A stretch of 57,939 nucleotides of DNA. Source: Klebsormidium nitens. Lineage: Eukaryota; Plantae; Klebsormidiophyceae. Within the stretch, counting starts at the first letter, position 1. Each line of letters begins with the position of its first letter. Of this stretch, positions 30,996 to 52,627 are shown piece by piece. The notes below the pieces were generated by a model. It ran no database searches. It was given only the letters and a program-made list of their open reading frames with translations, and was not told the DNA's origin. The position numbers were made by a program, and so were the translations under genes. The stretch is taken from positions 1 through 57,939 of the forward strand of contig DF237510.1 in assembly GCA_000708835.1 (NCBI GenBank). The letters are read 5' to 3'.

Positions 30996-31091
30996 CTAAG
31001 CTGTCCTAGCATGTACCCTATTCCGAGCCTGGAGAACTAACGCTTGTATCTCGTCTTTCACGCGCTGGTCGAGCAGACGCCTGGCCGCTTT
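30996..31091 (-). pseudogene. 3' remnant of host gene C split by the transposon
   Basis: Reads (K)AARRLLDQRVKDEIQALVLQARNRVHARTA*. It joins in frame with ...LYFSNVEEADK at 50677 once the element and one TTT are removed. Confidence 0.8.
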
Positions 31092-31117
31092 CACAGGGCG
31101 GATTCCCGTTTCCCCGG
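31092..31117 (+). repeat. Left TIR CACAGGGCGGATTCCCGTTTCCCCGG
   Basis: Exact reverse complement of 50651-50676. Confidence 0.95.
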
Positions 31118-31330
31118 AGGTCGGGGAACCTCCGGGCAGCACCCCGGGGAGCGCGTTCCCCGGCCATTTGCCCGGACTTGGGCCATGTCCGGAATAGTTG
31201 TCAGGTCCCCGGGGTTTGCCCGGCCATCGGGCAATAAGTCCGGGCAATCAACCCCGGGCAACAAGGTCGGGCAACAGCAAACACATGTCCGGGCAACAAC
31301 AGTGCAGTGCAACCCCGGGCAAACAGCGGG
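31118..31330 (+). repeat. Left subterminal repeat region (multiple CCGGGCAA / CCCCGG motifs)
   Basis: About five or more (C/T)CGGGCAA copies plus CCCCGG/CCGGGG motifs, mirrored by TTGCCCGG at the right end. Confidence 0.8.
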
Positions 31331-33986
31331 GAATGATAGGGGAAAGAGAACGGCAATTATTCATGCATTTAACGCAACTGGCTCACAGCCTGTCTGAGAA
31401 AAGGTCAATAAAGAGGACGTTACAGTCAGTCTGGTTGCTTCTAGGTAGCGATCAAGCAACACGCTCGGACTGTAGCAGCCAAGCTTTGATGTTTCTCAGC
31501 TAAGAAGTGTTTCCCGACGAAAGCGGTAGTCTTAGCGAAGCCTCTCTGACTTGAAGTACACTGCACAACTCCAAACCGTGGACTACATTCTAAGAAAGGT
31601 TCCAGTCCCGTTCCAGTGCCAGTCTGTTTTTCAACTCTAACAAACCCGGCTCGATTGCAAGTTATTGATCTACCAGCTGCCAGGCAAAGCTCCCGAGCCT
31701 TGCGGCCCCGTTCCTCGTCACCATGCCCTGATTGCTTGTCTTCTGCACAAGCGAAGAGAACTGCCTCAGATTATGTAGTGAATTTATGCACGCAAACACG
31801 ATCCTGAAAGTTGTTGCGGGGGAACGCGTCTTGGCGGTTTCAAAAGTAAGCTGTCGTCGAAGAAGCGATTCAAAGTCTCACGTAATCAAACAGCTTGGAA
31901 TAGAACGAGATTTCTTCCTCAAAAAGCGTGGGCTATCAAATTACATTTTTCCGATTATTCTCACTTCAATAATGATCCGATGTGTTCCGTTTCTTGCCGA
32001 TGACTCAAAAACGGGAAGCTTTAGCGAACAGTATGAATGCAGACTGCAAGTTCTGCAAATCGAATTCAGCTTAACTGACTAGATTCTCTTCAGAGCTGCG
32101 CTCTTACTACGCACCTTCCTGCGGAAGAGGATTCAACGACTTGTCAGTTCGCGTTCCGTTTGGGTGCAATTGGGCATGATTGTTTCTGGCATTCGAGCGC
32201 CGCAGAGCTTCCGACGATGCAACTTGCTTTGCACGTCGTCTTGTATCCAAGAGTTTCGGAAGCGCAGCAAAAATCATACGCGTTTCGAGTTCATCGCTAT
32301 GAAGGCCTGGTTCAGCGACAGTTCATTACGCCCGATCGAACCTTTGATGGATCGAGATACAAAGCACGTCGCGACGTACTTGAGATGAGATTGAATGATT
32401 AAAGAGAGGCGCCGCCTTAGACTGCTCACCTGGACTTTACAGGAATAACTGAACTTTCTGTATGTCATCAGCCTGAAAGGAGATGTACGTAACCGTGTCA
32501 GTCACACAACGTATAAGCTAGAAAAATTCACATCAGCTTTGAAGGAGTCTCGGGACCTTGCATTCAAGCCAGTCACAGACTGTTTGACTCTGACCAGCAG
32601 CATGACCAGCAAGCAGCTGCTTTCACGCGCCAATTCCGTTCAAAGACAGCTCACGTCGCAGATTCCGGACGAAGTGTTCTTTAGAAAGAGGCTGAGCCTG
32701 CTCACCTCAACTATGCAGACGTGAAAGAAACTTCATTTGTTGACCCGAAAGCAGAAAATAGTGTCAGACGTACGTAGGCCGCGAGCGCAAGCATGCGTCT
32801 GCGCGATGAACGCCGGCCTCTTCGATATAAGGCGCGCCAACTATCGCGCGACATAACTTCTTACCAAAGCCGATCTGCGCTTGTTTGGAGGCGAAAAACT
32901 TCTGCGCCGAAACTGACGGCCGCTCTGATCTGCTCATGGTGCTTCGGTTCAGCGCACTAAACCCTAAAAACCCGTAGTACAGTTTTTCGAATCCCTGATA
33001 CTCAAAACCCTTGACGCCCTGACGCCTGGCATTCCAACCAGTCTTGTCGGTGCCCCGTTCAAGCACCGCTCTCCCTCTAAGCCAGCCGTCGTTCTTGCAG
33101 ATTTCAAACCGATTTCTTTAACCGCGCCCACTCCGACATCCACGATGCCAGTCGTGCAGGGAGAAGAGCTTCAAGTTCCTGAAAGGCGGTCACTTAACCC
33201 GCGCCCGCTAAACCCGCCTATTCTGATGATTATGATGCTTCCAAAGTCCGATTCCTATTAAAACACCGCCCTTTCCAACATTCACAATTCTTGTCCAGTA
33301 GGGCGGAAAGCTCCAATTTTCTGAACCCAGATCCTTAGCATCGCCCAGTCCGACAATCACGGTCGCTGTCCTGCAGGGAATCCTGAAACCCCATAGTCTT
33401 GAACCCCGATCCCTAAATCCTAACTTAAATTTCGAACCCAACCATTTCAAACCCCGTTTTCCAAATCCCGCCCACGTTTACATTCTCTCTGAAAGCTTCG
33501 ACCCCGATCGGTGGCTCCCAGGAGGTGAAGCCAAGCCACCGAAACACAACGAGGCGTACTGGCCATACGGTACCGGGCCGCGGGTGCATGCGCATTGGCA
33601 AAGGGTTTGCGATGATCAAAAGCAATCTGCTTAGCAAAACCCGAGCAGTTTCTTAACGCTGGAATCGGCTACAGCCGCTTCCGAGCATCCTGCCAGTCTC
33701 AGTTACAGAGGAGCGTTTCAGTTGCTTCTCAGACTTTCGCCTGAATGCTGATCTTAAGATACCAACTCTTGTGCGGGCTCCGAACTCAGAAGCGTGCTTA
33801 AGACGATGTTTCTGCTTAGAGCCGATGCTCTGGACTCGTGGGGGCTCCGACCCACTTTGAAATACATTCAGAAAGCCCCTCAAGGTACTGTACAGATGCT
33901 TCGATTCTGTCCCTCGGTCGGAACCCTGTAGGCTCGGAGTGCTTAAGCAGTGCCCTTGGAGAAATTCTCAGATGCAGAGTATTTAC

Positions 33987-36900
33987 CTAAGAGATGAAGA
34001 CCTCGTTCGGGCTCAGCTTCGCCCCGTCGTCGCGCCACTTCTTGTTGGCGATGTAAACGCGGCTTTCTTCGATGGCGCCTTCGCTGAGCAGCTTGAGCAG
34101 GTACGGCAGATCGAAGTCCTCCAACTCTGGCGACTTCGAGATGTTGTCAAGCTTGAGGCTATTGATTGCCTTGATGACTTCCTTCCGAGAGACCTACGCG
34201 GAAAATGAAGGCAGGAGCGAAGCATTTAGAAAGTTGTGTATGCAGACAAAGGGCAATTCTGGTTTTGAAGTGAAAGCCCATCCAATGACTGCATTCGATC
34301 TGCTTCCGTGATTCCAGGCGAAGAGGCTCAGGCGGGGGGCTCTTTGCAGCTGATCCGGTCTGCTCCTTTGTGGTCTTTCTGAACCTCAATCCAAGTTACG
34401 AAACTTTGCCAGACGGCACGTCGCTGTCAAAGGCATGATCGAAGCTTGCGAACTCTTTCCAAACTCCATACAAGTCCGAGGAAGATTAACGGCCAGACTT
34501 CAAGAGGGCACGACGACCGGAGTTTCTCTCGGTGCGCGCGCGTGTCCGCGTGCTGCCGGTCAAGCACCTGCGGAAAACGGAACGGAACCGGAACGGAATA
34601 CTACAGGAACGGACTGAAACGTGAAGGAAAACCCGAAAAGAAAAAGACCGCTCCTAGCAAGGGGGTTTCTCCCGGTGCACGCGCGCGCCCGCGTCTTGCT
34701 GGTCCTAATCCGGCGGAACGGAAGCGGAACGGAACCGGAACGGAAAGCTACCGGAACGACATTGAAGCGCCACGACCAGACTTCAAGGGCGCAAAACGGC
34801 GAGACTTCAACAGACAATAACGGTCAGATTTCAAGGGAGAATAGCAGCCAGACTTCAAGGGGGCACAACGACCATAGTCTCTCCCCGTGCGCGTGCGCGT
34901 GGCCGCGTGCTGCCGGCCAAGCCTCAGTGAAACGGAAAAAACGGAATCGGAACGGAAAGCTTTAGGAACAAACTCAAAAGGGAAGGGGATTCAAAAGGAA
35001 AAGACCGCTGCGCGCAAGGGGGGTTCTCTTGGTGCTCGCGCGTGTCCAAGAGAACTAGGATTGCAGTAAGCAGAGTGGTAACCAGGATGTTTCAGATCAC
35101 AAACCGCAGCAAGCAAACTGCGGTTTTCTCTTGCAACGGAATTTTTAAATCAGACTTTCAGTTCGGATCTCAGCAAACATCATCGGCTTCTGTACTCAAA
35201 TCTCAAAAGATTCGGTCACCCACACTCCATTTCCTGCGAGTTTTGGGTTGAACGATCTTTTTCCATTACAGAAAAGACAATCAAGTTTGAAGCAGTTTGG
35301 AAGCGGCTCTAGTCTCACCCTGTCGCACCAATTGCGTCATTGCCGAAACTAATCCTGGGAAAGAACGAAAGGACGAAGTTTCGCTCACTAGCTAGGGAAC
35401 TCTCAATGAAGGCCCCACGCACCTTCACATCTTCCTTACCTGGTATATGTACTTCACGCGCAGGTACTTCATGGCGATTATCTCGTAGTTGAAGACCATA
35501 TGTTTGTCGATCTTCTCGCCCTTGTCCTCAAATGTGCCCCCCATTGGCAGGTCGCAAACCGGGTCTTCGTCCGAATCCGGATCTGACGACTCGATGACGT
35601 CACCCGCAAGGTCCAGTTCCTCCTCGCTACATTCGGGGTCGCCCTTCTTTTGTCGCTGGGACTTTGGTCCGGCCGTTCCGTTTCTGCCCCGCTTTCTTCC
35701 ATCTGCACCCTTCGCCCGTTTTTCCGCAGCTTCCCCCGCTTCCCCAGCAAGCCCAAACTCGCACTCGCAACCCAGTGCCTTGCAAAGTCTCGGTTCGTGG
35801 ATCTTTCGCTGCTTCACAGCGTTCCGTTTTGGGCGCGCGGCGATTTCGTCTTCGTTTTTTCCGTTCCCGGCTCCGCTTTCTTCTTGGGGTTCGGTTGCGT
35901 TCTTTTCCGGGTCCTTCCTTTCAGCTTGCTCTAGGTGAAGTCCAGCCCCTTGATTTTTGTTTGTGGCCCCTTCTTCTTCCCCACTGGCTCCGCGGCTTTT
36001 CGTCTCGTCCTTTCTGCTATCAGCGTTCTCCCGTTCAATCTCCGAGTTCTTACCGTTCTGGTTTTCTTTGGGTTTGCTCGGCTTCGTACTTGGCCCGTCG
36101 CTCTTTGATTTTTTCTTTGAAGACTTGTCACCGCCTTTCCCTTTTCCGCTTCCGCTCTCTTCCGTCCGTTCCTCTCGAATCCGCTTCCCCTTTCCGCTTC
36201 CCTTCTCCTCGTTTCGTTCTTTTGGTACGTGCAGACTGCCCTTGGCGTCCCGCTGTGGCTGCTCCTCTAGGCCTTTGTTTGGCTCTGCTTGCTTTTCGGA
36301 TTTGCTTTCCGGACTGCCAGACAAGCCTGAGGGGGGATGATCGGCGGCCGGAGTTGCTGTCGGCACTGCAGCTTCCCAGACAGGCGCCGAACCGCTCGCC
36401 TTGCTGGCGGGAGTGAACGAGGTTGCCTCCCGGCTCCCTCCAACCTGGAAACATAGACAAAACTAGCGTCAAGTTCAGTTGAGCGTGGGAAATAAGCAAA
36501 CGGTTGGACTTTGCAAAGGCCAGGGTGCGTGCGTGCGCGTATGCTGCGCGCGATGTTACCTGCTATTGAGCTTGCTGATCAAAAGTTGTCTAACATTGTT
36601 GTCGCACCTAAAGGTGATTGGAAAAAGAAAGCGTTTGATAAGTGTTTGGAATCAGTCATCAAAGCGCGCAGCACACGAGGGACTTGGAACGAAACGGGTT
36701 CACAGAATACCCGGGTTAAACACCAGTTCAAGCCCTTCACATGCAAAACCGTTGTGCACAAGCAAACGCTGTTTTGGGAACGCTGCAGATAATCTATTCG
36801 TCAACGTCTGCCGTGCAACATCCAAAAGCAAGGGACTGAAAGTTGTCCTCTGAGATTCTATCCACCTTCAAAATGCGGCCCAGTCTGGCGCTAAAGCACG

Positions 36901-39900
36901 CGCGAAACAAGCTGAAATTGAATTAACCCAAAGTTCCACTCAGGAGGGCAGTCTGATGTGTTTACGCTCAATCAGATCTGGTGTGAAGACCTATCATGAC
37001 CAATCAAATGATTCAGAAGCTCTTACCGGGGTTTTGGCTAGTGCCGGACGTTCAAGGGGTCTGTTATGAATGGAGCCACGAATTCGCTTGTCGAAGTTGG
37101 ACCAAGCAGAAGTAAACCAAGAAGAAGTAGACGTGATTGCTTCATCTTTATCACGTAAAAAGTATGTCTATCAGTAAGGCATGACAAAGTGGCACCAACG
37201 CATTCTTCAAGCGGCATATCAAGAGTCGTCACGTTGATGAACCCTTTCGTTGCGGTTGGCTAGCCTGCTCCATTACAGTTACACTTTGAGTCAATAAGAA
37301 GGGCAGTCTTGTACAGATGCCGATCTTCAACTCAAATACTTGCATGCAAAATCTTCAAGCAGTCCAGATTCGAGACACCAGGCTCTCTTTTCAATCAGAT
37401 CCCTAACTCCGAAAACACCAAAACCGAACACATTCAAATCCTTGAGCGATCAGCGACCACTTTGAGACTCTTCGCTTAGTCAAAGGATCCAGCGAAGGGC
37501 GCAAGAGTTTATCAAGCAGACTTCAATTCTTTTGTAGCCCCATATACTGGTTCACTGAGCCTGGTAAAAGTTGTGAAACTGTGGCAGTTTTTCCAGTAAG
37601 GGCCCGTAGACGTACCTTTGTCAATCCTGAGCTGGCAGCGTGTGCTTCGCAGAAGAAATTCTCCCCATCGTACTCCTTGACGCCGAAGAGGTCGTTCATC
37701 ATCTTCTGGAGGCACAAGTTGTGAACCGGCTTCTGGCAAACGTGACACATATGGACTGGCCGACCGGTGTTTACCGAGCAGAAGCTCATGACGCAGCGGC
37801 TTTGAGCTGACTCTTCCACTTGTTCGTTCCCCTGCACATGAGGTGGCAAACGAGTTTGTCAAAAGCTTTGCACGATTCCTTACTACTATTGTCCAGGTTA
37901 CGGCAATTGCTTTGCCAGGTAGTTTTGATTTCAAAGCGGGTCCTACTCCGAGTGGTGAAAGTACCGGGTTTAATCTGTTGCTCACTACGTGTTTGCTGCA
38001 ACGAAGAGACATGTCACTCTTCCTGCAAGGCATTAGTAGTACCGCAAGATTTTCTCGATGCCGTACTGAAAGTGTGCTCTGATTCTTAAGACCATATATG
38101 GACCATATATGGATCTGGCTTTTTGCTCGATGAGCCGTTGCAGGTATCAAAAGATGCAATAATGATGAATCAGTAGACACTTTCCAGGGAAGAGGAGCAA
38201 GGTACCAGGAGCCTAATAGCATATGCCAAGATTGTTTGCTTGAGGCCCACGTTTGATCGCACCTGACCAATCGCTCCCTCTTCGCAAGAAGCCACCTGCA
38301 TTCCCTCAGTCCGGTTGGACGCGGCTGAATCTCTGGATTTTGATGACTGATGTCGGACGCCTTCGTCTCCCATGTCGTTCTGCAATAAGAAAGAGTCTTG
38401 ATATGATGTCCAAGGAACTGCAACTTGAAGTAACTGTACATCTAAGAGGACTTCCAAGTGAATGGTTGTTTTGACTCCGGAGCCTGGCTTGTCGAGTCTG
38501 CAAAGATTTGGACGGTATGCTACAAGCAATACGATACCAAGAACTCTAAGGACCATGCTTCTAGAAAGATGAAAGAACGCGAAACTGCTCATTGAAGCAT
38601 TGCGGTACCTATTATAGATTACAAACCCGATTATGGAGATTTGGATGGACGAGACCGTACTTGATTTTGGGGCTGGGTGAACCTTGCAGTTGAGCCCTCG
38701 TCTGCTGGCTTGGTCTGGCCGCCGCTTGCTTGGGTTGTGGACATGTCCTCATCCGCTCTTCTGCTGCCATTTGCCTACAGAAAAGGGCACTCACTTACAA
38801 TCAAAGGTGTGCAAATGATTGACCTGGGAAGTGCAACATCAATCAGCTCAGCTCAAAATCAGACACAAGAAGGTTGAGCAATGCCTCAGCAGCCTGAGTT
38901 ATACCGCAAGCTCCACATCATCCAGTACTTGCATGAACGTCTGTCACGTGACCAATTGCCTCTTAGTACTGACAGGTGACCAGTCATGCTCAAACTTCAC
39001 CGTACCTGCTTCTTTGAAGCTTTATACTTGGTAGCCTTCTTTGCCTGCTGTGCGGCGTATCGTTCAGGATGCAGTTTGACCTTCTTGAGCTGTTCCACAA
39101 TCTGTGAAAAGGTTCTGTTGAAAGACTCTGCAAACAAAAGCGTATTTTATAACATCAGCAAGCTTACTCAAAGTATCTCCGGATAAATACGCCAGAGTGT
39201 TTCCTTTGGTGCTGAATTCTTGAAAAGATCTTGACTTCTTCTTTGACCTGTTTGCTGGTTGAAATGCACGCCAAGCTGCATCCAAACTTTTGTGTACCGA
39301 CCGCAGCTTTTAGATTCAGCCTCACCAATGAGCTGTTTCAAAGTTCTAACCTAGTTCAATCTATTTCATATCACGAGCAGACCAGAAGCTGTTCAATTGA
39401 TCTTAGCATTCTGTCATGTTACCTGCTGGGTGCATTTTCAGCAGAAACAAGGTCATGTTCGAGCAGATTTTCATTTGGTAGATGGCTAGATTCTGCTGAA
39501 TCAACTCCTAGCCAGTGCTCAACAACAATTTTGTCAGGTAGCTAAATGGTCAGAAGCTTTGAAAAGTCAGAACATAACAGCATTCATCCAGAGCAGTCTC
39601 ACCTGCAGGCCACTTGTAGGATCTGTCACCCTTGACCAAAAGCACCCCACCATCAGTATCGTCCATAGTTTCTTTGAAAAGTGACTCTCTCCATTCGACA
39701 TCTTCTCTCCTCACTTTGAAGTTCATCCCTTTCAGCCTCTCATTTGTCAATCCATCTAGCGCATTTTCAATCCTGTCCTTTAGATCCTTGTACCATCTTC
39801 GCAGTGTGCGCACGGCAGGTTTTCCAATGATCTCCTCGTAGGCTCCACTGTGCACCATGTGAGAAAAGAGATCATCAGCCTGTATAACTCCACCAGCAGA

Positions 39901-40305
39901 AACCTTGTCATCCTTGCGTTGCTTCGAGTCTTCCTTGGCTGCCGGTTGTGCATTGACATCTTGTACTGTGGACTCCTCAACCTGTCCTTTCCCAACTGGT
40001 TCTCGAGATGCGCTACATGACTTCTCCTTTGATGATGCTCCAGCACCTTGCTCAGTGCTTTCCTGCCATTCAGCTTTCATCTGCTTCAAAATGGCAGAGT
40101 GACCAAGCTTAATTTTCACACCCGTTTCCAGCTCAACGATAGAATCAATTGCTTCATCTTTCAATGCCATGAATGCTTTGCCGGTCACGCAGCCATCGAC
40201 CAGGTACGTGCTGTATTTGGATGTCCCTAACGCTTCAGCAATGACACCAGCCAATTCCTCTTCTGTTAATCTGGTCACATTTTCAAGCACGGAGTTGGCA
40301 GCCAT
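33987..40305 (-). CDS. Transposon-borne multi-exon gene D: N-terminal SAM-like domain, PHD-like Zn finger, long K/E/S-rich region, small C-terminal globular domain
   Basis: Exons: 40305-~39604 (LTEEELAGVIAEALGTSKYSTYLVDGCVTGKAFMAL...KLGHSAILKQMK, SAM-like), 39127-39006, 38774-38661, 38379-38263, 37831-37616 (CVMSFC...HMCHVCQKPVHNLC...FFCEAH), 36444-35440, possibly 34567-34472, and 34193-33987 (stop). From 38774 downward all junctions are phase 0 with GT-AG. Connectivity between 39.1 and 39.6 kb is not resolved, so this could be two genes. Confidence 0.55.
34480..35070 (-). repeat. Degenerate 4-copy repeat (143/212/145-bp spacing) in a gene D intron, echoing the 34567 acceptor region
   Basis: TCTC(T/C)CGGTGCGCGCG-like blocks at 34525, 34668, 34880, 35025 with GGAACGGAACCGGAACGGAA tracts. 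CCAGACTTCAAG occurs at 34493 and 34848. Confidence 0.85.
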
Positions 40306-41454
40306 AGTTGCCAAGAATTGGTCACGCCACTCTCAACTCGTCTGCATTTGAGCGAACCAAGCAGTTGCCAGATCTAGACGTCAAGGCTGGACCGTATGGT
40401 TATGGCGATTGGCGCGCTGTGTGCCTCTACCTCCTCAGCTATTTTGCAGCTCCATTTTTGCATCTATCAAAGCTGAGCTGATTCCATGCCAGAGCTGATC
40501 AACCAGCTCCACTGGCCGGGTACTGATTACTGCTCATACTCAGAGTGGTTCCCAGCAGATGATTAGGCCCGGAGTTTCCGGCCAGAGGTGCCCCTATCTT
40601 ATCGACGGTTCGAAAAGGCAGTGAGAGGCAAATCGACGGACATCATACCAGGATTTCTGTGCGCGATCTCTAAAGTCCTGCAGACCCTAAATTCAAGATA
40701 GCAATTTGAGAGGGACAGGCTCCAAGGGGCAGAACTTCACCGAGACTTCACGTTTCAAAAGCACTTCGATCTGAAAGCTCGAAGTTGTCCAGCTAGGGCA
40801 CTGCCAGTGGTTAGATCAAGGCAGCAGCAGGCGGCCAGACTCTGATCTGAAGCTTAAAGAACTCTCGAAGTTATGGAGATCGATCTCTGTACCCAGCTTG
40901 CAGAAAGGAGCTGGAGAGTATTCGTTTGTGTTATATGGTATGTTCCAGCCTGAGGGAGGTGGTGCAAAACAAAGGAGCCTATGGTTTCAAGCTTTTGGTG
41001 CACTCGGTCTGCTGCCTGTAAACGAATGCACAACAACCTCAGGACGTAAGCGCCTTTGAACATGCAGACAAGTTTGACAAGATTAAGAGACGTTGGAAGA
41101 GACCAAGCTTCAGTCCAGGTTGTGACTTCAAATTTGTGCAATTTGCTGCAAGTTGAAGAGCACTGAGGGAGGGTGACTCGAGGAAGGTAAGTTGAATTGA
41201 CATCTTTTTTGACATTCATGTTTTTAACTGGATGTATGATGCCGTTTTTAGGTGCATTTCTAAGCTGGAAGTGCTGGCCAGGCAAAGTCTATGCAAAGGG
41301 TACTGTACATATGCATGGTATGCTCTGCTTAAAAGTCAGTGCTGTGTTGTGCAACGTCAATTGGATCCATCATCAGCATGACCACCTTAAATGAGACTAA
41401 GCTTCTGTGCTTTAAGACTGTAATATTGCCTCTTTCTTTGAACTTCTCAACCTT

Positions 41455-44400
41455 GTGGCCCCATGCATCTGCGACAACATTATTGCTTACGCATGGTCTC
41501 CTCCATCATGCAGCGTATCCAGACAGCCTCCTGTCAATGAGAACGGCCTTGAGCTTTGCACCTGCGTCTTTCAAGGCTGTGGCAAGAAGGACGGCCGGTT
41601 TATCCCGAGAACAACACGCTTGCATCAAGAGAAGAAAGACAGGGAAGTAATAGAGGCAGCAGAAGTAGTTCGCATCCCAGATGGCAACGGCGTTGAGATC
41701 AGAGAAGCAAACAATCAGCAACAGAATGCTGATCAGGCTCAGCCGGCCGGAGGTGCTGGTGGAAACGCTGTTTGGCAAGGGCTTGCAAACCTCCTGGACA
41801 TTGATGACAATGAGGCGCCAGACTTGAATCCAACAGAAGCTGAGGAAGCAGATTCAATGGAGGATTCGCTGCTCTCAGGAACAGGAGGGAGGTTTCTTGA
41901 CAAAGTTCTGGACTTAGTGAAAAAGGGCGACGAGGCTGGCTTTAGCAATGCCGACCTCGACTGGATCTTGAAGTGGGGTTTTGGTCAGAAGGACTCAATT
42001 GCAGAGGCACTGGATCCGGACTGGCGCGCCACAATGAAGGAGCTCAACGTTATGGATTCGCACGACCAGGTTAGCTTACATTTGTGCTTCGTAATTTCAT
42101 TGTCACCTTCTTCGTTTGACTTTAGATTCTGAAAGGTACTTCTGAGGCTTAAAATTATAGTCTGCATGAGTCCAGGTATATAGCTTAGCTGAGTCTTTTG
42201 TCCCTGCTCAATCTTTGGAAAGAGTCATTGGCTCCAATTCACCTTTTAGTGCAAACAACTTGGTTGATTGCTTGAAGAACAGACTTTGCATGAAGCTAAG
42301 GGGCTTGGAATCATAATATTAATCTGCATGAGTCCAGGTATACAGGTCAGCTGAGTGCTTTGTTTCTTCTCAATCTTTGGAAAGAGTCATTGGCAAAACT
42401 TGTCTTGGGTTCACCTTTTAGCTTAAAATGTTTTAAACAAGATGTCTGGCTGATTGTTTGAATAGCAGACTTTGCAGTGAAGCAAGCGATTCACATTTTG
42501 TATGCAAAACCATTTCACTTCGGATCGTCATCGTTGGTTACAGTTAATCACTTCAAGCTCCGTCCCCCTTTTGCCAACAGGTGCAAAGTTTCCTCATGCG
42601 CGTGTCGCGCCTGCTCGGTGAGCCTCAGATGTGGCGGTTTCACGAAGGAGCCAACGGCAGCTGGCACCTTTTCAGACCGAGCGCGGAAGACGGAAACCTG
42701 CCCTGCCCCCACTGCCCCGAAGGGCCCAGCCGGCCAAAGTGGCGCGACTGCTCCGCGCATCAGGAGCGGAGCGAATGCGGCTTCCTCCGGCGGGACGCGC
42801 TAGAGCTGCCCTACATCGGGCTGGAGCCGTACGTGCGGGCGAAGCTGACAACCGAAGCCGGCTGCCAGGACATGCTCGGGGCTTGGCGAGAAAGAGACAG
42901 GTGGCTGAATCAGCCCCCCGACAGTGTCCCGGAGCCGCAGCTGGAATACTGGGACGGGAAGCGCTTCAGGGAGCGGTCTAGTTTCCTCGACCCCAACGGC
43001 ACGTGGCTGCTCCCCCTCGCTTGCGCAAACTGCTGCCGTCCGCGCCCCGTGTACTGCTCTGAAAACCTAGAGCTTCCCTCCTACGTTCGTCCAACTCAAG
43101 CCATGTGGAATGCAACCACCGGAAGTTTTGAGACGGAGTGCCCCCTGTGCCGGCAGCCAATAAGCGCGAAGAGGGAGGAGCTGGAAATCTCGGGGGACCC
43201 AAGAAACGTGATCTTTGGTTGCCACGTAGATGGCTTTCCTTCCTCGCGCACGACAAACAAGAGCAGCTGCATCCTAGACGCAACCCCCCTGGTCGTCTCA
43301 AAACGGTTGCGCTACCGGGCCTGCGAAGGGTGGCTCTGGCCCCTTTGTTTTCCCCCGGAAGAGAAACTGAAAAGCGGGCCGGAAGCGTACGACCCGTTCA
43401 TCCTCCTTCTGGTCCTAGATTCGGTTCGGCTTTTTGTAGAGGGGATCTTGGTAAACTACGCCCTAGATCCTGCAAAAGTGAGCCCCGACGTTCCCCCCCG
43501 ACACGGACAGCCTGTGCGCATCCGGATGATAATGTCCTGCTTCTTCGCCGATCTGCCAGCCCTTGCTGACGTGGCGAAATTCAAAAGGGGGGGGTGGCAC
43601 GTGTCGCGGCGGTGTCCGCAGCTGGCTGTCCGAAACGGAGATCGGTTGGTGTACGCGAATGGGCGGCGGCTTGTGCGTGATGGCTGCGGAAGCAAGAAGA
43701 TGAAGGACGTGGTCGCGGCGATGCTGGAGCACCTGGGGGCAAGAACCAAAGCGGAGCGCGACGAGATCGGCGCGAGAACCGGGGTTGTTGGGTTCAGCAT
43801 GCTGGCCATTCTGGGGGGCGTGTACAGCTTGGACCTGGTGCTGGACATGTGCGGGGACTGGCTGCACAAGGGCTCGGAGAACCAGGTGAAGCACCACGTA
43901 AGAGACACCCTGCTTCCGGTCACCAGAAAGGAAGGCGGCCTCCTGGTGCAAGAAGCCCCCCCCCGGATCAACATCAAGGATTTCGGAAAGCGGCTGCAGG
44001 CGATAAAGCCGACGCGCAAGCTTGCAGACGGCCGGTGGGTCAAGGACCCGGAAGAGCGCCCCCTCGGGTTCTGGAAAGCGGAGGAGCACGAGAAGGTCGC
44101 GCTCTACTGCCTGCCGACTGCGTACGCGGGGCTCATTGACGAGGAAGGGTATGCCATTACCCAGCTCGTCGCGTGCATTCAGCAAGCAGTATTCATTGTC
44201 GGATCGCGGGAAGGCTGGACGCCGCAAAAGCGAGCGGTGTTTGACCAGCTGTGCAGAGCCAAGTTTGCGCGCGCCGAGGAGTACTTCGGCTCCAAGCTCC
44301 GCCCCCTGGAGCACGAGACCTGCCTTCACACCCTTTCTGATATCCTGAACCACGGGCCTCCGGACAGCCTGTGGTGCTATCTGTGCGAAAGGCACATCCG

Positions 44401-46328
44401 CAAGCTCATCAACACCCCGAGCAACGGAAAGGAATACGAAAAGACGTTGTTCAAGCGGGCATTGAGTGCTTTGGTTGGCGGATGGCTGCAACAGCGGAGA
44501 AAGGAAGCGGCGCTGTGGCGGACGCGGCAGTTCGCGGGAGATGAGCTGTGGGCCGAGGCAAGGGAGGGGTTTGAGGGCGGGATTCTGTTCGCCTCTTCTC
44601 AGAAAAGGGCCGTCGCGTTTGTCGAGGGCCTTGAAAGGTGGCCCCCAAGCAACCGGCAGCCGTCGGACGTCGACCTGCTCAACAGCGTCCAAGCAAACGG
44701 GGTCGCCGTTGGGAGTGTGCCACGAACCTGGGGTTTCCGTACGTTCAAGACCCTCAAATCCCCCCAGCGAATCGGCGTAGAGAGGTGCCTAGCCCGCGCA
44801 CCAAACGCAGCCGCAAGGGGCCTCCAGCTGGATCCGAAGACCGTAGTGAACCTGAAGAGCCTGCAAAGCGGGGAGCATAACTTTGCCCCAAAGGACTTCG
44901 TGGTCGTGCGGGGGGGTGCGCCGGGCGGGGAAGCGGCGGACGAGCAGTTCGGACGGCTGGAGAGCATCTTCTGTGTCGCGAATAGGCGAGGCGCGAGGCA
45001 CGTGTTTCTGGATGTGAGATTCTTCCCGGTTCAGATGGAAGGAGGCGAGCCAGCGGGGGGGCAGTGGCACAATTGCCTCTTGCTCGGCACTTTGAAATCT
45101 CTGGCGGCAGACCGCGTGCGCCCGGCAAGCAGCCTGCTGCGCCACTTCATTCCGTTCGCCGAGCCAGGCGAGACCGTGTTCACGAGCGCCGCGAACCACG
45201 TCATCGAGGTCTGCCCCACCGGCTTCGGTTTTGCAGCGCACGACGTATGGGTCCCGGTCTTTCCCAGGGTAAGTTCGGCCGGCCTTGAATCTATTTTAAC
45301 TGCCCGCATCGACGGAGTCGAAAATCTTCTCAAGGGTTGCCAGAACTGGAAGTAGAATAAGCAGCAAAGCGGTCGAACCAACGCGCAGACTCCTTGCTTT
45401 GTTTGCTTCACGAGTTGAGCTTGTAACGTTCGAAATCCGCAAACAGCCAGTCGGTGCGCGCGCACGTCGATTATGTTGACCCAGATCTCAGTCAACCAGC
45501 GCTTCAAACTGCAATGAGTCATTGCGCTTCAAGCCTCGTCTGTGATGAAGCCTCAAAATCCATTAACAAAAGGTTATAGCGCACTCAGTTCTACGCTCTG
45601 CAGCTGGATAGATTTGCCACGTCAGCGGGTAAGGCGCCGGGTTAGAGCGCGGTTAAGTATTGGTCAAGGCCGCGCTCGCCTCGACCCCTGATTCTACTGC
45701 GGTCTGCAGTTTTTAAACTCCCTTCCCTCCACGGACGCTCTATTACAGCACGCGAAGAGAAACGATTGGCGCGCTCAAGTTTTGACTCTCCTCTCTTCAA
45801 CAGGTTGGCGACGTCGTCCGGCTGCCGGTGGTGGAGCCTCCGGACGTCGTCCCGGAAGGGGTAGCGGGCAAGTGGGGCTACGGAGTGCCCGTTTCTGTAC
45901 TCAAGTCGGTGCGGCCGGGGCAGTCGGTGGCGTACGCTCTCGTCCGGCAAGTGAACGAGGACGGCAAGCTGGTGGACGTGCAATGGTTGAAGCGGGCTCC
46001 GGGCGAGAGGGCGCTTCCGGACGGCAGCAAAGCCGGCGTCTGGGGTTTGTGGCCGGTTAGCATGCGAAGAAACCGGAACGGCACTCTGGTCGAGGAGGTG
46101 GAGGGAGACTCTGCGAGCGACTCGGAAGAAGACGGGGAAAGAGGTCGGCGTCAAAGGGGCGGGGCAGCAAGGCCGCAAGGGGGGTTCGCCTTGAAGCGCG
46201 CGCCTTGGAACGCTCTCCTCGACCGTGTCGAGGGCGTTGTCAAAGCGGAGAGAGATGCAAACGGACGTGCTTTGGACGGAGGGCCACTTTTCAGTTTCAA
46301 AGAGCTCCCCCCGGTGCGGCGCAGATGA
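41455..46328 (+). CDS. CMC-EnSpm/CACTA-type DDE transposase (Tnp2/Transposase_21-like with DUF4218-like region), about 1250 aa, at least 3 exons, start codon unresolved
   Basis: Exons <=41514-42069, 42581-45268 (896 codons without a stop), 45804-46328, phase 0. Motifs: YWDG, RNVIFGCHVDGF (D1), FFADLPA (D2), SRRC (C2C position), GDWLHK, WKAEE, HETCLH (H-x4-H), HGP..LWCYLCERH (E). Confidence 0.88.
42150..42480 (+). repeat. ~162-bp tandem duplication inside transposase intron 1
   Basis: TCTGCATGAGTCCAGGTATA at 42161 and 42323; CTCAATCTTTGGAAAGAGTCATTGGC at 42207 and 42369. Confidence 0.9.
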
Positions 46329-47722
46329 GCGGGGCTTAGAATAGTAAGGGTAGAAAGGTGGGGCCCTAAAAACGGAAGCACGGAGAGCGTGTCACTTGCA
46401 TACAGAACCAGATTGATGTGGAATTGAGAAAGTGCATTGAGTACGGGCAGACAATCACCCGCTCATCTTTTCGTTTCTGGTGGATGGTTTGGACGGAACG
46501 GAATCCGAACGGCAGCAGAGTGGCTGGGAAAGCGGAAATTGGCGCCCGGTGGGGGCAGTCGGGCAGGTCACTGGTGGAAGCAAGGGTTCGGACAGCTCTC
46601 GAGCAGAGATTGGCACCTGGTAAGAGCAGCCGGGCACGCCCAGAGTGGAGTCGGGGTCGGCAAGGGGCGTCGGGCAGCCCCAAAACGGATCGGAGGCATC
46701 GAGGAGGGGACTTCGAAGAACTTTCCCCGGGTGCGGCGCATGATCAGGGGTATATCAGGTGCGTTCGACATTCGATCTCTATACTCTGTTAGATCAAGCG
46801 CAGTCATGATATGGCAAAGCTATCAAACTGCTTTTGCTTTGAGGTAGCAGATAAGGCGCACGCGCGAGTTCCCGGGCGATCCTGCTTTCTTCGCCCTTCT
46901 TCATGTGCTCAAGAGTTTCGCTTTGAACCTACTCGGAAAGCCTGGCAATCGTACGTTGCAAAGCTGGAAGATAAATCTCTTCAAGTTCGTGTTTCTTTTA
47001 AAGTTCCAGCTTGTCCCCGGATGATGGCGAACTTTCGGATGGTCCCTCGAAATTCTAATGGACAGACAATGTTTTGGTAGAGGGCTATCAATTGTGAAGT
47101 GCCGCCCGACGAGTGCCCATTTCAAAAAGAAAGCGAAGAATGTTTTCTTGCGGCTTGAGGTCAGGCGAATCCGTAATTTCATATGAACGGAGCTCCGTTG
47201 AGCTGGTCAAACGCTCTAACGGAGCGCGAACTAGCATGGCGGGAGAAAAATTCAAGGTTAAGGATTAACCCGAATCTCAGTTAGCTGACCAAATTTGCAG
47301 AACCCAGCAGGAAAAGGTACTTTGTGATCAGCTTAGCAAGGCGCATCCGAATCAGACCTAAAAGCTTATAGCACATGTACTTTCCGTAACCTGCGGAAGC
47401 TCAAGACCGCCACGTGTCCGGGTTAGGCCGGGTTATCGCGCGAAAATGCAATTCGATCGAAAATACCGTTTCAGCGCAGAGTTTAGAATAGACGTCTTGC
47501 CTGCTGATTTGCTTGCGCAGACTCGACGAGATTGCTGATGCGCCTGTTGTATGTTGCACGTTTCTTTCAACTTTTAACCAACTTCCGTGAACTTTCACTT
47601 AACTCTTCTAACCTACGCGTAGATTCTTAATGACTGGCGCCGCTCGAAGGCCCTCGAGGGGGATCCGATCCAATTCAAAGGAAGTTTTGCTGTTTCGGGT
47701 TTGCCGGTTGTTTCACTTTTCG

Positions 47723-47759
47723 ACCTTCCGTAACCTTCCGTAACCTTCCGTAACCTCCG
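47723..47759. repeat. Tandem decamer (ACCTTCCGTA)x3 + partial
   Basis: Read directly from the sequence. Confidence 0.85.
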
Positions 47760-50354
47760 CGCAGATCCGGAACGAGTGGCGCTGGCCCGATGCCCTCGAG
47801 GGAGATCCCCCCGTCTGGCGCGCCACGTCAGAGGGACCCCGCTCGACCGCCAGTTCCGCTTTGTCTTTTACACGTGGCGCGCCGGACACACGGCGCCAGC
47901 CAGCATGCGGACAGAGGGGCGCTGACGTCAGCCCGTGTGGACAGGGCGGTGCTGGCGTCAGCCCGGACCAGGCCCCGCTATTGCTGCTTCAGCAGACAAG
48001 GCAGCAGTTGAGCACGGAAGAAGTTGCACGGTGAGAATTTTGGTGACGTGGCTGAACGGGTGCGGTTACTGGGTGGCATGGCCACCAATGAAACGGCAAA
48101 ACCTGGTGCGGTCACCGGCTGTGAGAAAGGTCTCGGAAGCTGTGGTTTTTGAGAAAGCGCGCCGAGACACTTTGCACCTTCGTCTTGCTGTTTTGGGTGT
48201 TGGCTTTCAAGGGGTCTCGAGGTTGTCCCGTTGCTCGTTTGTCCTGCTCTCTAAGTTTTGGGTTTCGAAGGTTTGGAGGGGTGGAACGGATCAGTGCAAT
48301 TTCTAGATGGGGCCATTGTTGCGTGGAACCTGCGGTTCAACATCAAGAAAGCTTGGCGGAGGCGCTGATATAAGTCGCGCGCTTTTTGGACGATGTGGCT
48401 TCATTTTGGCCAGACTACGGCACGCTTGTACGGAGTCTTTTGGCGATGTTTTGATATGGAAAGCGACTTACCTGCAAGATGTTTTCGAAGACGTCCGAGC
48501 GCCTTGCTAGAGGCTGAGGCCGCCTCATGGCTGAGAAGTATGTACAGTAAACCATCTTCATTGTGAAACCTCAAAAGCACGTGTTTAGTATGCTGGGGCT
48601 TTCAGCTGGGCTTGTGGCCGTCCGCTCGGAATGAAGGACTGTTCTGGTGTTCTAAAATGAGAAAGAGCAAAACTCAGTCGTCGAGGGAACTTTCAAAAGC
48701 CTTTCGAAGTCAAGCTCTTTCAAGTCGGAACTTGGACTACCAACCATGGGGGGAAGAGACATGATAATCAGTGACCAAGAGCGGGTGCGTACGTGGAGCT
48801 CGCGCAAAACGAGGTAAGGTCCTGCTGCAACTTGAAGATCATTTGCCTGCCTTCTGCTGCAGCTTGTCCACGGTTTCCCGATCGAATATTGTCGAACGCA
48901 GATCTATGTGCCGTTCGTACTGGCATCGGTCTCTTCTCAGTCTTACCGTATTCAGATATGTAAGTCACTAAGGATTTCTAGTTCTCCAGCATTCAATGGT
49001 TTTAGCAAAGACTTCTCTTCGAAGTGTATCTTTGGCAGTACATCTTTGCAACGGTTTTGATTGTGAGATGAGATAGACCACCATAAGCGTTGCAAGAAGA
49101 AGAATTGCCTACTAATTGATTCTGACCAACTGCTCCAGTTGATCTCGTTTGCTTCATCGCTAAGCTTTCGACGTCTGATTATGTTAGAACATGTTGATTT
49201 ACACCATCTGCTACATGAATATCTCAATTCGATCCCTGATGACGAATCTCGACTTCGACTCCAGTGATTCGTCTCATCGGAGTTTTCAGTGAGAAATTGA
49301 AGTCGCCACCATCGTTTTCCAACCATTCACGATTCGAAACCAGGTTACACCTAGTTATTTCTATCCGGGGTGGCTCCGGGGTACATCTGGACCTTTCAAT
49401 ACACGATACATCTCAATTTCGTAAGACCTTTCGAAACAGGACACGTGTGAACTTTCTTAACCAGGGTGCATCAGCGGTAGATTCTAAGCAGGACCCCTGA
49501 AACAGGTTGTCGGTTCGATTTTGTCTCTGCATCCAAGTTCTGGTGTTGTCTTGCTACTACGTCTCCAGATGCGACAGTCGAGTCCGATGTTTTCATGTCG
49601 AACTGTGCCGCTCTTCGTTTTGGCCCAGCCCTGGTCAGGCTTACGTGGTTCTCTTGTTTGACATATGATAAAGCTTTTGAGTCGGAGCTCCAATTCGAAA
49701 ATGGTAGACGGCCAGGCCAATCCAACATGAAAAAGAGTGGAGTCCGGGAATACAAGAAATACAAGAGAGGATAGTTGCGAATGCCTGACGGAAGAACCTG
49801 AACCGTACGTATCCACGCTTTGTGGATACATATGCAGATATCTGGAGTACAGAACAGCAGAGCGCTCAGTGAGCACATCAAATATAGCTAAAGTTGCTTC
49901 AAGCCCAGTCATGTGTGCTCTTCTGGAGTCATGTATTTCAGAAAATACTTTGTCTTCGGGACCAGTTTTGCCCGGACCCGATCGACTGGCCCGTTCATAT
50001 CAGATACATACATACACACATGGCGTCTTTCTCATGCAGGATCAAGGGATGACTGGAGCTCGGAGCTGCATTGAGGCCGAAGCGGGGTCACACGAGGCGA
50101 TGGATTGTTGCAGACATAGATATCAGGTTGCACCGGATCGAATCTTGTAGTGGAGAGGATATATGTATATCAGAGGTTACTTCGGATCAGGCTTGCAGAA
50201 ACATTACAACTGCAACGAGACACAAGTTTTGGTACACATATATACTTATTTCGAAACTGTTTTCACAAGCCCGGCTGTCCGGGCTGTCAATCAAGACACT
50301 GCTGATTCGCTTTTCGAACACGCTGGAATCTGGAACGCGGCTAAGTAAACTCCT

Positions 50355-50650
50355 CCCCGGGGTTCCGTCCGCTGCCCGGACTTGCTTGCCCGGACTTGTT
50401 TCTTGTGTTCCCCGAGCATGCGCGTTCCCCGGTGTATCAGCTTTTGCCCGGACTTCGTTGCCCGGAGTTTGCCTTCGTATTCCCCGGACATGTCTGTTCC
50501 CCGGGCTTCCTTACCCCGGGCAGCAGCTCGGGGAGTCATTTCCCCGGCCTTATCTCCGGGGAACCCTTGCCCAGGGATCCTCCAACCCCGGGCAAATCAT
50601 CCGCCAGCCCGTTGCCCGGCCTCAGGCCGGGGAAACCCCGGGCAGTAAGC
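50355..50650 (-). repeat. Right subterminal repeat region (multiple TTGCCCGG / CCCCGG motifs)
   Basis: Inverted counterparts of the left-end CCGGGCAA motifs. Confidence 0.8.
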
Positions 50651-50676
50651 CCGGGGAAACGGGAATCCGCCCTGTG
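50651..50676 (-). repeat. Right TIR
   Basis: CCGGGGAAACGGGAATCCGCCCTGTG, followed by TTT. Confidence 0.95.
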
Positions 50677-52627
50677 TTTGTCCGCCTCCTCGACATTCGA
50701 GAAATACAGATAGCGAAGCGGCCCGTCGAGCTGAGGACCGGAAGGATCCACAACCACAGCGCCCTTATGCAAAAGCGGACAAGGCACTTCGTGACTTATG
50801 CGAAAGATCGACACCTCAAACCGAAGAATCGGCCGCGGCCCCTCCGCAAACGAAGCTGGAAAAGTGAGCACGACTGCCGCCCCTTCTTTCAGGTCCGTAT
50901 CCGGCAAGTGCCGTACCCTCTCCTCCGGCAAAAGCGTTGGCGTATAAAACGCCGTTCCATCCTCTGGCGGCCACGTCTTGTGTCCAATTGCCTGGCACGA
51001 GATCGTGACGTACACCGGAAGACGTCCGTACGTTTGCAGGTGGAGCCGGACGCCCGTTTGGGTGACGTCAGAGATCCGGACCTCGAGGAACTCGAAGGGG
51101 CCCCAGGAAAAGGACCGGCTGACGTCAGAAATGAGGCACGCTGGCGTGTGCACCTGCATCTGCACTTTGCAAAGCGAGTCAGAAAAGAGGCCCGAGATGA
51201 CGGGGCTGCCGCGTACGTAATATTAACCGGAGAGTCATCGTTTAGGTTATCTGATGTGCTTCCGATCCGGGACGGGAAAAGGTGACACGTTTTGAAGTAC
51301 GCAGCTCGTGACACTGACCAGACGAAAGCTCGTGATTAGTCACAGCAGGACTACTATCACAGCAAGCACAATATAGACCTTCTCATGATTAACATAAATT
51401 TTGACCCGCGCACGTTTCAAGCCTTTCGTCAGCCTCGGGCCTTTTGATCCCTGTTGGAGGTTTGAAAAGGTGTCGGGTAATCTGCGTACTCGCCTTTTAA
51501 AAAACATCAATCTGACGTAGCTGGATTACGTCTTCATCAGAAAAGAACAGCAAGATTATGCCTCTCTTGCAATAGGTAAAGCATCAGTAAAACCGGCGTC
51601 CTTCCAGCAGCTACACCTTTGAACATTTTCATTGGAGGAAAGAACGTGCAGAATTCAGACCCTGGCTTAGTTGAGCAGGTTCAAGTTAACAGCTTCTTGC
51701 TGTAGAAGCCAGCGTAAAAGATGCTCTTAGAAGGTGACGGACAAACTTAGGGATTCCTGCGAACAAACCTGTCATTACTCATCTTCTGAATCGCCTGAAA
51801 GTTCACCCTCAAACAGCCGTAATCAAAGTTGTTTAATCTCTTCAGAACGTTTCCGTTTCCGGGACAACGGAGCTTGGCTCGGACCACGGCACGTCCAGAT
51901 CACTAGCACAGGAACAGATCAGCATTAACCAAGTTTGAAGTTGGTTGCGTGCCCATCTACCAAGAGAACGCAATTTATGTCTGGTTCGATGCTCTTTCAC
52001 CATTTGACAATAGGGGCAAAAGCTTCAACGTCTTGTGTGCAGATCAACCTTGCTTCATAATCGAGGATGCTCTTAAAATTTGAACAAAGCCTCTCACCTC
52101 ACTCGAAGCGTTTTGTTCACCGTCCCCCATTTGCAATCCTGGCTCACAACAGCTCTCAGAACCCTCAGGTTCAGGATAATCATCATGAGAGTGCCGTGCC
52201 GGGGAAATCATGTAAATGGCGAAGTAGACACCCCGCATGTAACACCGGAGTGTGGCCGCCACATGCACGTCAAACGCCAGGATGTGGTCGCCGTAAAACT
52301 CCCTCAAGAACGCCAGACTATCCTTCCGAGCTCTTTCCAAACTGTTGTGCGTCAGTTGGCCGGAGATCACGGTTGGATTGCCCGCGTGCACTACTGTCGT
52401 GCCTCCATAATAGCTAAAGCCGACGTCAGCGACCAGGACGGTGACCAGCTGTTTCTGCAATTCCGGTGTCCATTCGGAGGCCGGAAGGGAAGATGTGAGC
52501 AGAAAGGTTACTTGGGGAGATGTTCCGAATGGATGGACCTCGAACGGGTCGACGTACTTCAGGCTGGTTGTGGGGCTTGTCGCCGGAAATTGAAATACGA
52601 ACTCACTTGAGTGTAGGAAAGTCGCCA
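50677..52627 (-). pseudogene. 5' part of host gene C (unknown function), interrupted by the transposon
   Basis: Open frames 52627-52049 (MATFLHSSEF..., GT donor at 52048) and ~51165-50677 (...SRSFSWGPFEFLEVRISD...LYFSNVEEADK). Exact splicing between them is unresolved. The beta-rich segment may be MATH-like (weak). Confidence 0.6.

Follow-up and report, generated by a model that had tools for sequence, protein, structure and literature searches.

The window analysed here, 57,939 nucleotides in length, is a whole scaffold of Klebsormidium nitens and carries a 19,585-bp (19.6 kb) element of the CACTA type (Table 1). Its terminal inverted repeats (TIRs) form a perfect 26-bp pair that starts with CACAG, a one-base variant of CACTA, and has 2 matches in the whole window against 0 expected; a 3-bp target-site duplication, TTT, is present on both sides. 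Subterminal arrays of CCGGGSAA motifs lie at both ends. The window has 12 copies of the motif version CCGGGCAA, where about 2 are expected, and every one lies within 31168-31322 or 49968-50619. A further version is CCGGGGAA; the outermost 700 bp at the two element ends contain 11 copies of CCGGGCAA and nine of CCGGGGAA. The TIRs, the TTT duplication and the CCGGGCAA repeats at the element ends are all confirmed. Full-length CACTA elements are defined as carrying a transposase plus a second gene, ORF2 (PMC4158355), and two genes are found here as well. The carrier is a CACTA/EnSpm-like (CMC) DNA transposon.

Table 1. Coordinates of the element, its two divergent genes and the alternative exons of the public model
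Feature	Position	Strand	Basis or remark
Target-site duplication TTT, left	31089..31091	.	Read directly; identical TTT after right TIR
Left TIR, CACAGGGCGGATTCCCGTTTCCCCGG	31092..31117	+	26/26 complementary to 50651-50676
Left subterminal array, CCGGGSAA motifs	31110..31330	.	CCGGGCAA copies and variant CCGGGGAA
Partner exon 6: 68-aa terminal domain and stop codon	33987..34193	-	Acceptor ttttccgcgtag, phase 0
Extra exon of public model KFL_005610050, doubtful	34436..34570	-	Adds 32 aa inside conserved C-terminal module
Partner exon 5: K/E/G/S-rich linker with basic clusters, and start of conserved C-terminal module (DLPMGGTFEDK...YIYQ)	35440..36444	-	P0010 homology
Partner exon 4: single C4HC2H PHD-like zinc finger	37616..37831	-	67-70% identical to P0010
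Alternative in-frame linker exon, public model	38263..38379	-	Canonical splice sites
Partner exon 3: linker, from the originally predicted chain	38661..38774	-	Canonical splice sites, phase 0
Partner exon 2: basic helix, extends conserved helical domain	39006..39127	-	Paralog homology; split codon G/AG restores frame
Partner exon 1: SAM domain (aa ~9-86), then a variable linker and the conserved helical domain (aa ~140-234)	39603..40305	-	Donor CAG/GTGAGA
Divergent intergenic region, presumed bidirectional promoter	40306..41517	.	Position alone
Transposase KFL_005610060, first coding exon, ends approximate	41518..42129	+	tblastn of P0001 and P0002
Transposase main exon, distantly tnp2/TnpD-like	42578..45271	+	100% identical to P0001
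Transposase last exon, C-terminal extra domain	45801..46328	+	Homology; weak SH3-like Pfam matches
Right subterminal array, CCGGGSAA motifs	49968..50650	.	Motif counts
Right TIR	50651..50676	-	Pairs perfectly with left TIR
Target-site duplication TTT, right	50677..50679	.	Same letters as left TTT

The two genes of the element, the transposase KFL_005610060 and a partner, KFL_005610050, are arranged head-to-head, with 1,212 bp separating the ATG of the partner (40305) from the point where transposase homology begins (41518). The transposase open reading frame is intact. Its link to the tnp2/TnpD proteins runs through a relative, P0008, with which it shares 26% identity over 574 aa (E 1e-41); P0008 reaches 27.0 bits against Pfam Transposase_21 (PF02992), below the cut-off of 28.6, and the transposase itself has no direct match to PF02992.

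The partner gene occupies 33987-40305 on the minus strand, and its six exons give 788 codons with zero internal stops. Each of the five introns has GT-AG borders and a pyrimidine-rich acceptor, and the phases are consistent. The original prediction of a phase-consistent chain of minus-strand exons inside the TIRs, about 1.2 kb from the transposase in divergent orientation, is thus borne out. Searches were run exon by exon, with whole-protein work carried out on public proteins (P0010, P0023 and others). Five of the six exons (1, 2, 4, 5 and 6) are each matched in tblastn by proteins of K. nitens paralogs. Exon 3 has a marginal similarity to the linker of P0010 (its score is attained by 12 of 300 shuffles), and the alternative linker exon at 38263-38379 does not resemble the paralog linker.

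The public model KFL_005610050 starts at Met76 (position 40080), omits the SAM domain and splices differently. The open frame has its first ATG at 40305, and the SAM-coding part is open from there; as read from the genomic sequence, the full-length reading corrects the N-terminus of the public model and adds the SAM domain. The extra exon of that model at 34436-34570 is missing from the paralogs and sits in a repeat-rich intron. The 68-aa terminal domain of exon 6 is real and conserved, as judged by sequence comparison, being 81% identical to KFL_001010310 (P0010) and 37-51% identical to P0015, P0016 and P0022. The domain had been predicted from the outset, although as one absent from the ORF track; the public model does include it.

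Could the copy in the window be a relic, in which a gene that functions in the family no longer expresses its full protein, the open frame being left over from a fairly recent insertion? The start of the public model at Met76 without the SAM domain, together with an exon that breaks the C-terminal module, would fit such a history, as would the presence in the assembly of a single close relative, with a transposase 83% identical. Against this stand the 788 codons in six exons without a stop or frameshift, the canonical splice sites, TIRs that match at 26 of 26 positions, the intact duplication, the intact transposase frame and a SAM part open from the first ATG in an exon 54% identical to P0009. 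We regard a relic as improbable.

Diversification together with the transposase

The partner could also be captured cargo, an ordinary host gene that was picked up by the element and has no role in transposition. Large CACTA elements capture host fragments, and one partner homolog, KFL_003620090, has no transposase neighbour among the transposase matches listed. By locus-tag numbering alone, however, five of the six K. nitens partner homologs adjoin a transposase homolog, with consecutive partner/transposase tags at five loci (KFL_005610050/060, KFL_001010310/320, KFL_004030030/040, KFL_004010030/040 and KFL_004530120/130). For a JGI partner homolog, P0011, and likewise for the transposase homolog P0005, the source is a contig of 61,847 bp.

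The two genes sort into the same two subfamilies. Transposase identity is 83% within the group formed by s561 (the scaffold of the window) and s101, 86-89% within the group of s403, s453 and s401, and about 51% between the groups; the corresponding partner identities are 46-81% per exon, 63-68% and about 25-50%. Compared with its closest copy, the partner is most similar in exon 6 (81%), followed by E1b and exons 2 and 4 (about 70%) and by the exon 5 linker (46%), so that the domain-coding exons are conserved and the linker is not. The same division appears in exon 2, which shares 69-70% of its residues with P0010 and 42-47% with the other subfamily. For the whole of exon 1, identity to P0009, a homolog from another sample, is 54%. 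These comparisons show, at the level of sequence, that partner and transposase have been passed on together as the family diversified.

When exon 1 was searched exhaustively with HMMER against 1.84 billion representative proteins, 11 representatives were recovered, all from this family and none from outside it. Metagenome scans with P0011 and with the transposase alignment gave no matches. The check that had been proposed, whether homologs are confined to copies of the element, points that way in the locus-tag pairs and in the lack of homologs outside the family in the exon 1 search.

The capture of a host gene, one of the two options left open by the original prediction, is rejected because the partner co-diverges with the transposase, down to about 51% transposase identity, and because relatives outside the family, including any of host type, are absent among the 1.84 billion representatives; in addition, the gene is a whole multi-exon unit with its own divergent upstream region rather than a fragment. 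On these sequence grounds simple capture is very unlikely. The other option, a dedicated second transposon gene rather than a chance chain of open reading frames, agrees with the conservation of the partner alongside the transposase, and the partner is, with high probability, a real and family-specific element gene.

Domains of the partner protein

The predicted partner protein of about 790 aa comprises a SAM domain, a conserved helical domain, a C4HC2H finger of cross-brace type, a long disordered linker with basic clusters resembling nuclear localization signals and a conserved C-terminal module of about 105 aa. An AF2 model of the N-terminus has a five-helix fold of about 70 residues (pLDDT 75-88). 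In a VIA comparison this model aligned to the SAM domain of L3MBTL3 (8y76) with Z 10.2 and an rmsd of 1.5 Å over 70 of 70 residues, and the best 50 VIA matches were SAM/PNT-type domains or SAM-containing proteins except for one or two low-ranked entries. The best Foldseek matches were likewise SAM domains (target-normalised TM <=0.81). The Polycomb-type and related polymerising SAMs (L3MBTL3, Ph/PHC3, Scm, SAMD1) share the fold over the whole domain, with Z values of 10.2-9.2 and rmsd values of 1.5-2.1 Å; LEAFY (4ude), through its SAM-like oligomerisation domain, aligns at Z 6.0. Known SAMs differ from that of the partner in sequence, with 10-20% identity, and in context, which here is a transposon gene.

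When the family profile was compared with PDB sequences, the SAM domain of L3MBTL3 was matched at E 0.0047 and 0.0066 and that of Polyhomeotic at E 0.34; Pfam SAM_1 and SAM_2 gave nothing at E<=1 with the exons or paralogs. The assignment of the exon 1 N-terminus as a SAM domain, which the original prediction had made in the form of a SAM-like N-terminus, is well supported by the modelled fold (Z 10.2) and by the profile match (E 0.0047). Of the profile matches that had been anticipated, that for SAM was obtained with the family profile, and neither SAM nor PHD reached the Pfam threshold.

The finger of exon 4 has the ligands C-x4-C-x(9-11)-C-x2-C-x4-H-x2-C-x21-C-x2-H, which are invariant in all eight family fingers, and none of 2000 shuffles of the protein shows a match to the pattern. 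The pattern originally described is thereby retained, apart from the histidine of its 'H-x-C' segment, which is not conserved. The members of the other subfamily have two tandem fingers and the window copy has one; a second, decayed finger in the window copy was ruled out, there being neither a Cys/His pattern nor a tblastn match between exons 2 and 4.

Is this a PHD finger? PHD and extended-PHD (zf-HC5HC2H) fingers resemble it in their eight zinc ligands, in the central C-x2-C-x4-H-x2-C core and in the long loop before the final pair, and the closing C-x2-H is like the second half of an ePHD; unlike the C4HC3 pattern of PHD, the first pair is widely spaced (C-x4-C) and the last ligand is His instead of Cys. 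The scores all fall short of significance. Against Pfam PHD (PF00628) the window finger reaches 12.9 bits and that of P0015 15.7 bits, with a cut-off of 24 (E 0.016-0.12), and against zf-HC5HC2H the window finger reaches 13.2 bits, with a cut-off of 29.1 (E 0.11). PDB PHD fingers match the finger at E 0.5-5, and the modelled finger of a paralog (pLDDT 61-87) aligns to PHD fingers at Z 2.1-2.8 and rmsd 3.6-4.5 Å over 50-55 residues (Foldseek E 3-9). All of the weak matches are nevertheless to PHD fingers (PHF24, DPF3, ASH1L, PHF2, UHRF1, BAZ2B and Pygopus). The PHD-like label of the original prediction is weakly supported, in that the ligand spacing and the consistent sub-threshold matches point to it and the Pfam and fold scores do not reach their thresholds.

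Exon 5 encodes 335 aa (K 12%, E 13%, G 12%, S 9%), in good agreement with the K/E-rich linker of about 330 aa that had been noticed originally, and is 57% identical to P0010 over 209 aa. Exon 6 alone had zero matches among PDB sequences, and the whole-family profile gave only noise there. The best VIA match of the P0010 model, at Z 7.2, falls on the helical domain, which is the noise level for helices; a wide VIA search with a 665-aa paralog model was taken up by this domain and hardly reached the finger or the C-terminal module. The best structural match of the C-terminal module has Z 3.6, and an Atlas lead stays below 0.9. This lead, to ParB/DndB-like proteins (Atlas 0.82-0.86, few shared features, TM 0.44), is retained as no more than a lead. 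Pfam gave nothing at threshold over every exon, the paralogs and the public model. No partner domain matched a known DNA-binding fold in structure and profile searches that barely sampled the finger and the C-terminal module.

These domains raise the alternative that the partner is directed at chromatin and does not bind the element ends, with the finger reading histone tails and the SAM domain polymerising, either to anchor the transpososome to a chromatin state or to counter silencing in the manner of VANC. Structurally, the SAM domain comes closest to chromatin SAMs of Polycomb type (L3MBTL3, Scm/Sfmbt, PHC3 and SAMD1), the weak matches of the finger are exclusively to PHD fingers, the tandem fingers of the other subfamily recall many chromatin readers, and the extra C-terminal domain of the transposase has weak SH3-like Pfam matches. 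On the other hand, every PHD match is sub-significant (12.9-15.7 bits against 24; Z 2.1-2.8), the finger departs from PHD in its last ligand and in its first pair, the common SAM fold says nothing about binding partners, and the family and profile scans gave no homology to VANC or known readers. We consider such a factor unlikely.

Accessory genes that act epigenetically, as thought or shown, are kept by other families of DNA transposons, namely VANC in the Arabidopsis VANDAL MULE and TET/JBP genes in fungi, the latter being carried by DNA transposons (PMC12730594). Their carriers belong to a different superfamily, however, and they are not homologous to the partner. The stronger proposal, that this family, from the lineage that led to land plants, encodes a polymerising, Polycomb-like SAM protein with PHD-like readers that acts on chromatin or repeat arrays for site choice or as a shield against silencing, is less likely still. 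If it were true, the SAM/PHD-like chromatin module would be a transposon-borne kind not described for CACTA elements, and if the finger reads histones it would provide a new example of a transposon with its own chromatin module.

A candidate helper protein

Besides the transposase, CACTA elements depend on a fast-evolving helper protein, and TnpA is known to dimerise; to our knowledge, the biochemistry of such helpers has been worked out in only a few plant CACTA elements. The preferred reading makes the partner an analogue, without homology, of the ORF2/TnpA helper of CACTA elements. Its gene lies within the element and is conserved alongside it, as befits a TnpA/TNP1-type accessory protein, and it evolves faster than the transposase, which fits the pattern of TNPA and TNP1 relative to their transposases: TNPA binds subterminal repeats and is needed for transposition, and TNPA and TNP1 are mutually non-homologous while the transposases are conserved (PMC2613891). 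By analogy, the 'candidate TnpA analogue' of the original prediction is the best available reading.

How might such a protein act? One conserved domain of the partner would recognise the element, most plausibly at the CCGGGSAA subterminal arrays, and self-association through the SAM domain would then allow cooperative binding and the pairing of the two element ends for the transposase; perhaps the partner also regulates the element. This TnpA-like mechanism is offered tentatively, as one that may well be wrong, and we lean slightly towards the overall explanation, which blends it with a family-specific gene. If SAM does drive cooperative binding at the arrays, a clear and testable model of repeat reading and end pairing would follow.

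Literature searches found no SAM or PHD-like domains tied to TnpA/ORF2 proteins, nor any CACTA element, or element of Klebsormidium, whose helper gene encodes a SAM or PHD domain. In this streptophyte alga, then, the helper slot would be filled by a protein with a recognisable SAM domain, a PHD-like finger and two conserved domains without known relatives.

The likeness to maize En/Spm TnpA, Antirrhinum Tam1 TNP1 and CACTA ORF2 is that of a second element-encoded protein, in an element with subterminal arrays, that evolves much faster than the transposase and that, from its modelled SAM domain, would be expected to self-associate. It does not extend to sequence or domains, and no exon or paralog matched TnpA-type families such as Pfam Transposase_24 at E<=1. 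Gene organization differs as well: maize tnpA is a splice variant of a single transcription unit, whereas the partner is a separate, divergently transcribed gene.

The carrier element and its two genes

The element carrying the gene pair is 19,585 bp long and of the CACTA/EnSpm type, an assignment made from its CACAG-beginning terminal inverted repeats (TIRs), 3-bp duplication, end arrays and distantly tnp2-like transposase taken together. The target duplication, TTT, lies on either side, and arrays of CCGGGCAA/CCGGGGAA occupy the outer ~320-700 bp at both ends; all 12 window copies of CCGGGCAA fall within these arrays, where about 2 would be expected in the window. Two stretches inside the element, of ~2.9 and 4.3 kb, hold no recognisable gene, judged by short ORFs.

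Features of the element and of its two genes
Feature	Position	Strand	Description
Left TIR	31092-31117		26 bp, perfect, starts CACAG
Left stretch	31118-33986		~2.9 kb
E6	34193-33987	-	terminal domain and stop
Public added exon	34570-34436	-	32 aa
Tandem repeats	34713-34874		periods 11 and 24
E5	36444-35440	-	K/E/G/S-rich linker, start of C-terminal module
E4	37831-37616	-	zinc finger
Public linker exon	38379-38263	-	linker
E3	38774-38661	-	linker
E2	39127-39006	-	basic helix
E1	40305-39603	-	SAM domain, variable linker, helical domain
Transposase ORF	42581-45355		
Last transposase exon	45801-46328		additional C-terminal domain
Right stretch	46329-50650		4.3 kb
Right TIR	50651-50676		26 bp, perfect match to left inverted repeat

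The transposase ORF matches KFL_005610060 of Klebsormidium nitens (a charophyte alga) at 100% identity, and the gene has three coding exons. The transposase has no direct Pfam match, and is linked to tnp2 through an intermediate protein (26% identity over 574 residues, E 1e-41) that itself falls just below the Transposase_21/tnp2 threshold. The additional domain in its last exon is 44-79% conserved among paralogs and has weak SH3-like Pfam matches only (UBE2O SH3-B, KIF2A-like).

The phase-consistent minus-strand exon chain of the original prediction was found again for the partner gene, with six exons and 788 codons that contain no internal stops. Phases were verified per exon, and searches used single exons. 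All five introns are GT-AG (donors, in order, GTGAGA, GTACGG, GTACGG, GTACGT and GTAAGG) with pyrimidine-rich acceptors, and the sole split codon, G/AG, restores the frame. E1, E2, E4, E5 and E6 can each be aligned to K. nitens paralogs. The public version of the gene (KFL_005610050, 746 aa) begins at Met76 (40080) and hence lacks the SAM domain; it has a different, in-frame linker exon in place of E3, and adds an exon from the repeat-rich intron, so breaking up a C-terminal module that is uninterrupted in paralogs. Homology gives convincing support to neither linker exon, and one or both may be used, since each has a length divisible by three. The tandem repeats lie in the last partner intron.

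Domains of the partner protein

In an AlphaFold model of E1, based on an alignment of 14 family sequences, two regions are confident: residues 1-86 (pLDDT 75-88) and 140-234 (pLDDT ~90). The first is a SAM fold in the predicted model, and the SAM-like N-terminus proposed from sequence is thus borne out by both fold and family profile, the latter matching the L3MBTL3 SAM domain (E 0.0047); Pfam made no SAM detection in E1. The top structural match is again the L3MBTL3 SAM (Z 10.2, rmsd 1.5 A, 70/70 residues), ahead of Scm/Sfmbt, CNK, DGK-delta, PHC3 and SAMD1; the best 50 rows are nearly all SAM/PNT-type domains or SAM-containing proteins, and Foldseek concurs. The helical domain (residues 140-234; motifs IGKxGVRxL, RLxxMNFK and YKWP) forms, with E2, the best-conserved region of the family, and its structure search gave nothing above helical noise (Z <= 7.2).

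The finger pattern C-x4-C-x9-11-C-x2-C-x4-H-x2-C-x21-C-x2-H is kept in 8/8 family fingers. Its weak matches are all PHD fingers, none significant (Pfam PHD, E 0.016-0.12; PDB sequences, E 0.5-5; Foldseek, E 3-9; fold comparison, Z 2.1-2.8), and the earlier label "PHD-like" is a fair description, short of demonstrated PHD membership. This weak resemblance, and the Polycomb-type nearest neighbours of the SAM domain, are what a less likely role as chromatin reader or anti-silencing factor would draw on. The studied copy and its closest paralog, KFL_001010310, have one finger, and the second subfamily has two in tandem. Tandem C4HC2H fingers occur in the K. nitens paralogs P0015, P0016 and P0022, and the lone finger of the studied copy resembles their second (PVHNLC, C-x2-H-A).

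The expected K/E-rich linker is present in E5, which is K/E/G/S-rich with basic clusters. The end of E5 and E6 form a conserved C-terminal module of ~105 aa (pLDDT 71-88 in a paralog model). Atlas look-alikes of KFL_001010310 residues 555-665, corresponding to window 35440-35560 and 33990-34193, were ParB-like DndB, GmrSD_N and DUF6551 (scores 0.82-0.86, TM 0.44), a resemblance too weak for a ParB-like (DndB/GmrSD_N) identity to be used.

Element gene or captured cargo

Is the partner a gene of the element, or host cargo captured by it? An exhaustive HMMER search of 1.84 billion representatives with E1 returned 11 proteins (4 K. nitens, 2 JGI and 5 Logan-assembly), all of the partner family and none outside it; the same clusters add one JGI and one Logan member. 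Metagenome scans for family loci gave no matches. With extra word-search matches included, the K. nitens count of partner genes comes to six, of which five are numbered immediately before a transposase homolog (005610050/060, 001010310/320, 004030030/040, 004010030/040 and 004530120/130), adjacency at the other loci being locus-tag order only. Within the {s561, s101} scaffold group, which includes the studied copy, transposase identity is 83% and partner identity 46-81% per exon; within {s403, s453, s401} the values are 86-89% and 63-68%, and between the groups ~51% and ~25-50%. The two identity matrices are congruent, and therefore, as judged from sequence, partner and transposase have travelled together since before the subfamilies split, with the partner evolving faster. 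Its conservation is highest in domain exons (E6, 81%; E1b, E2 and E4, ~70%; linker, 46%). Considering this co-divergence and the confinement of E1 homologs to the family, capture of host cargo is very unlikely.

The sixth homolog, KFL_003620090 (P0015), is full-length at 827 aa and has no neighbouring-tag transposase homolog among the matches listed; possible explanations are a solo copy, a domesticated one, or an element whose transposase has decayed.

A proposed fit to the ORF2/TnpA slot

Besides a transposase, full-length CACTA elements contain an ORF2 (PMC4158355). The second En/Spm protein, TNPA, binds subterminal repeats and is needed for transposition, and it has no similarity to TNP1 of Tam1 although the transposases are similar (PMC2613891). 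By analogy, the partner most likely fits this slot, because it lies inside the element, is family-specific and fast-evolving, sits beside short-motif arrays and has an oligomerisation domain. One of its conserved domains would bind the element, most plausibly at the CCGGGSAA arrays, and SAM self-association could make array binding cooperative and help the two element ends to pair. These features uphold the proposed TnpA analogy in part; against it, structure and profile searches identified no DNA-binding fold among the partner domains. In the literature searched, SAM or PHD-like domains are not described for any CACTA helper protein, nor is this Klebsormidium family, and the slot would here be taken by an unrelated protein with recognisable domains. 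Gene structure also differs: En/Spm TnpA is a splice variant, whereas the Klebsormidium partner is a separate, divergently transcribed unit.
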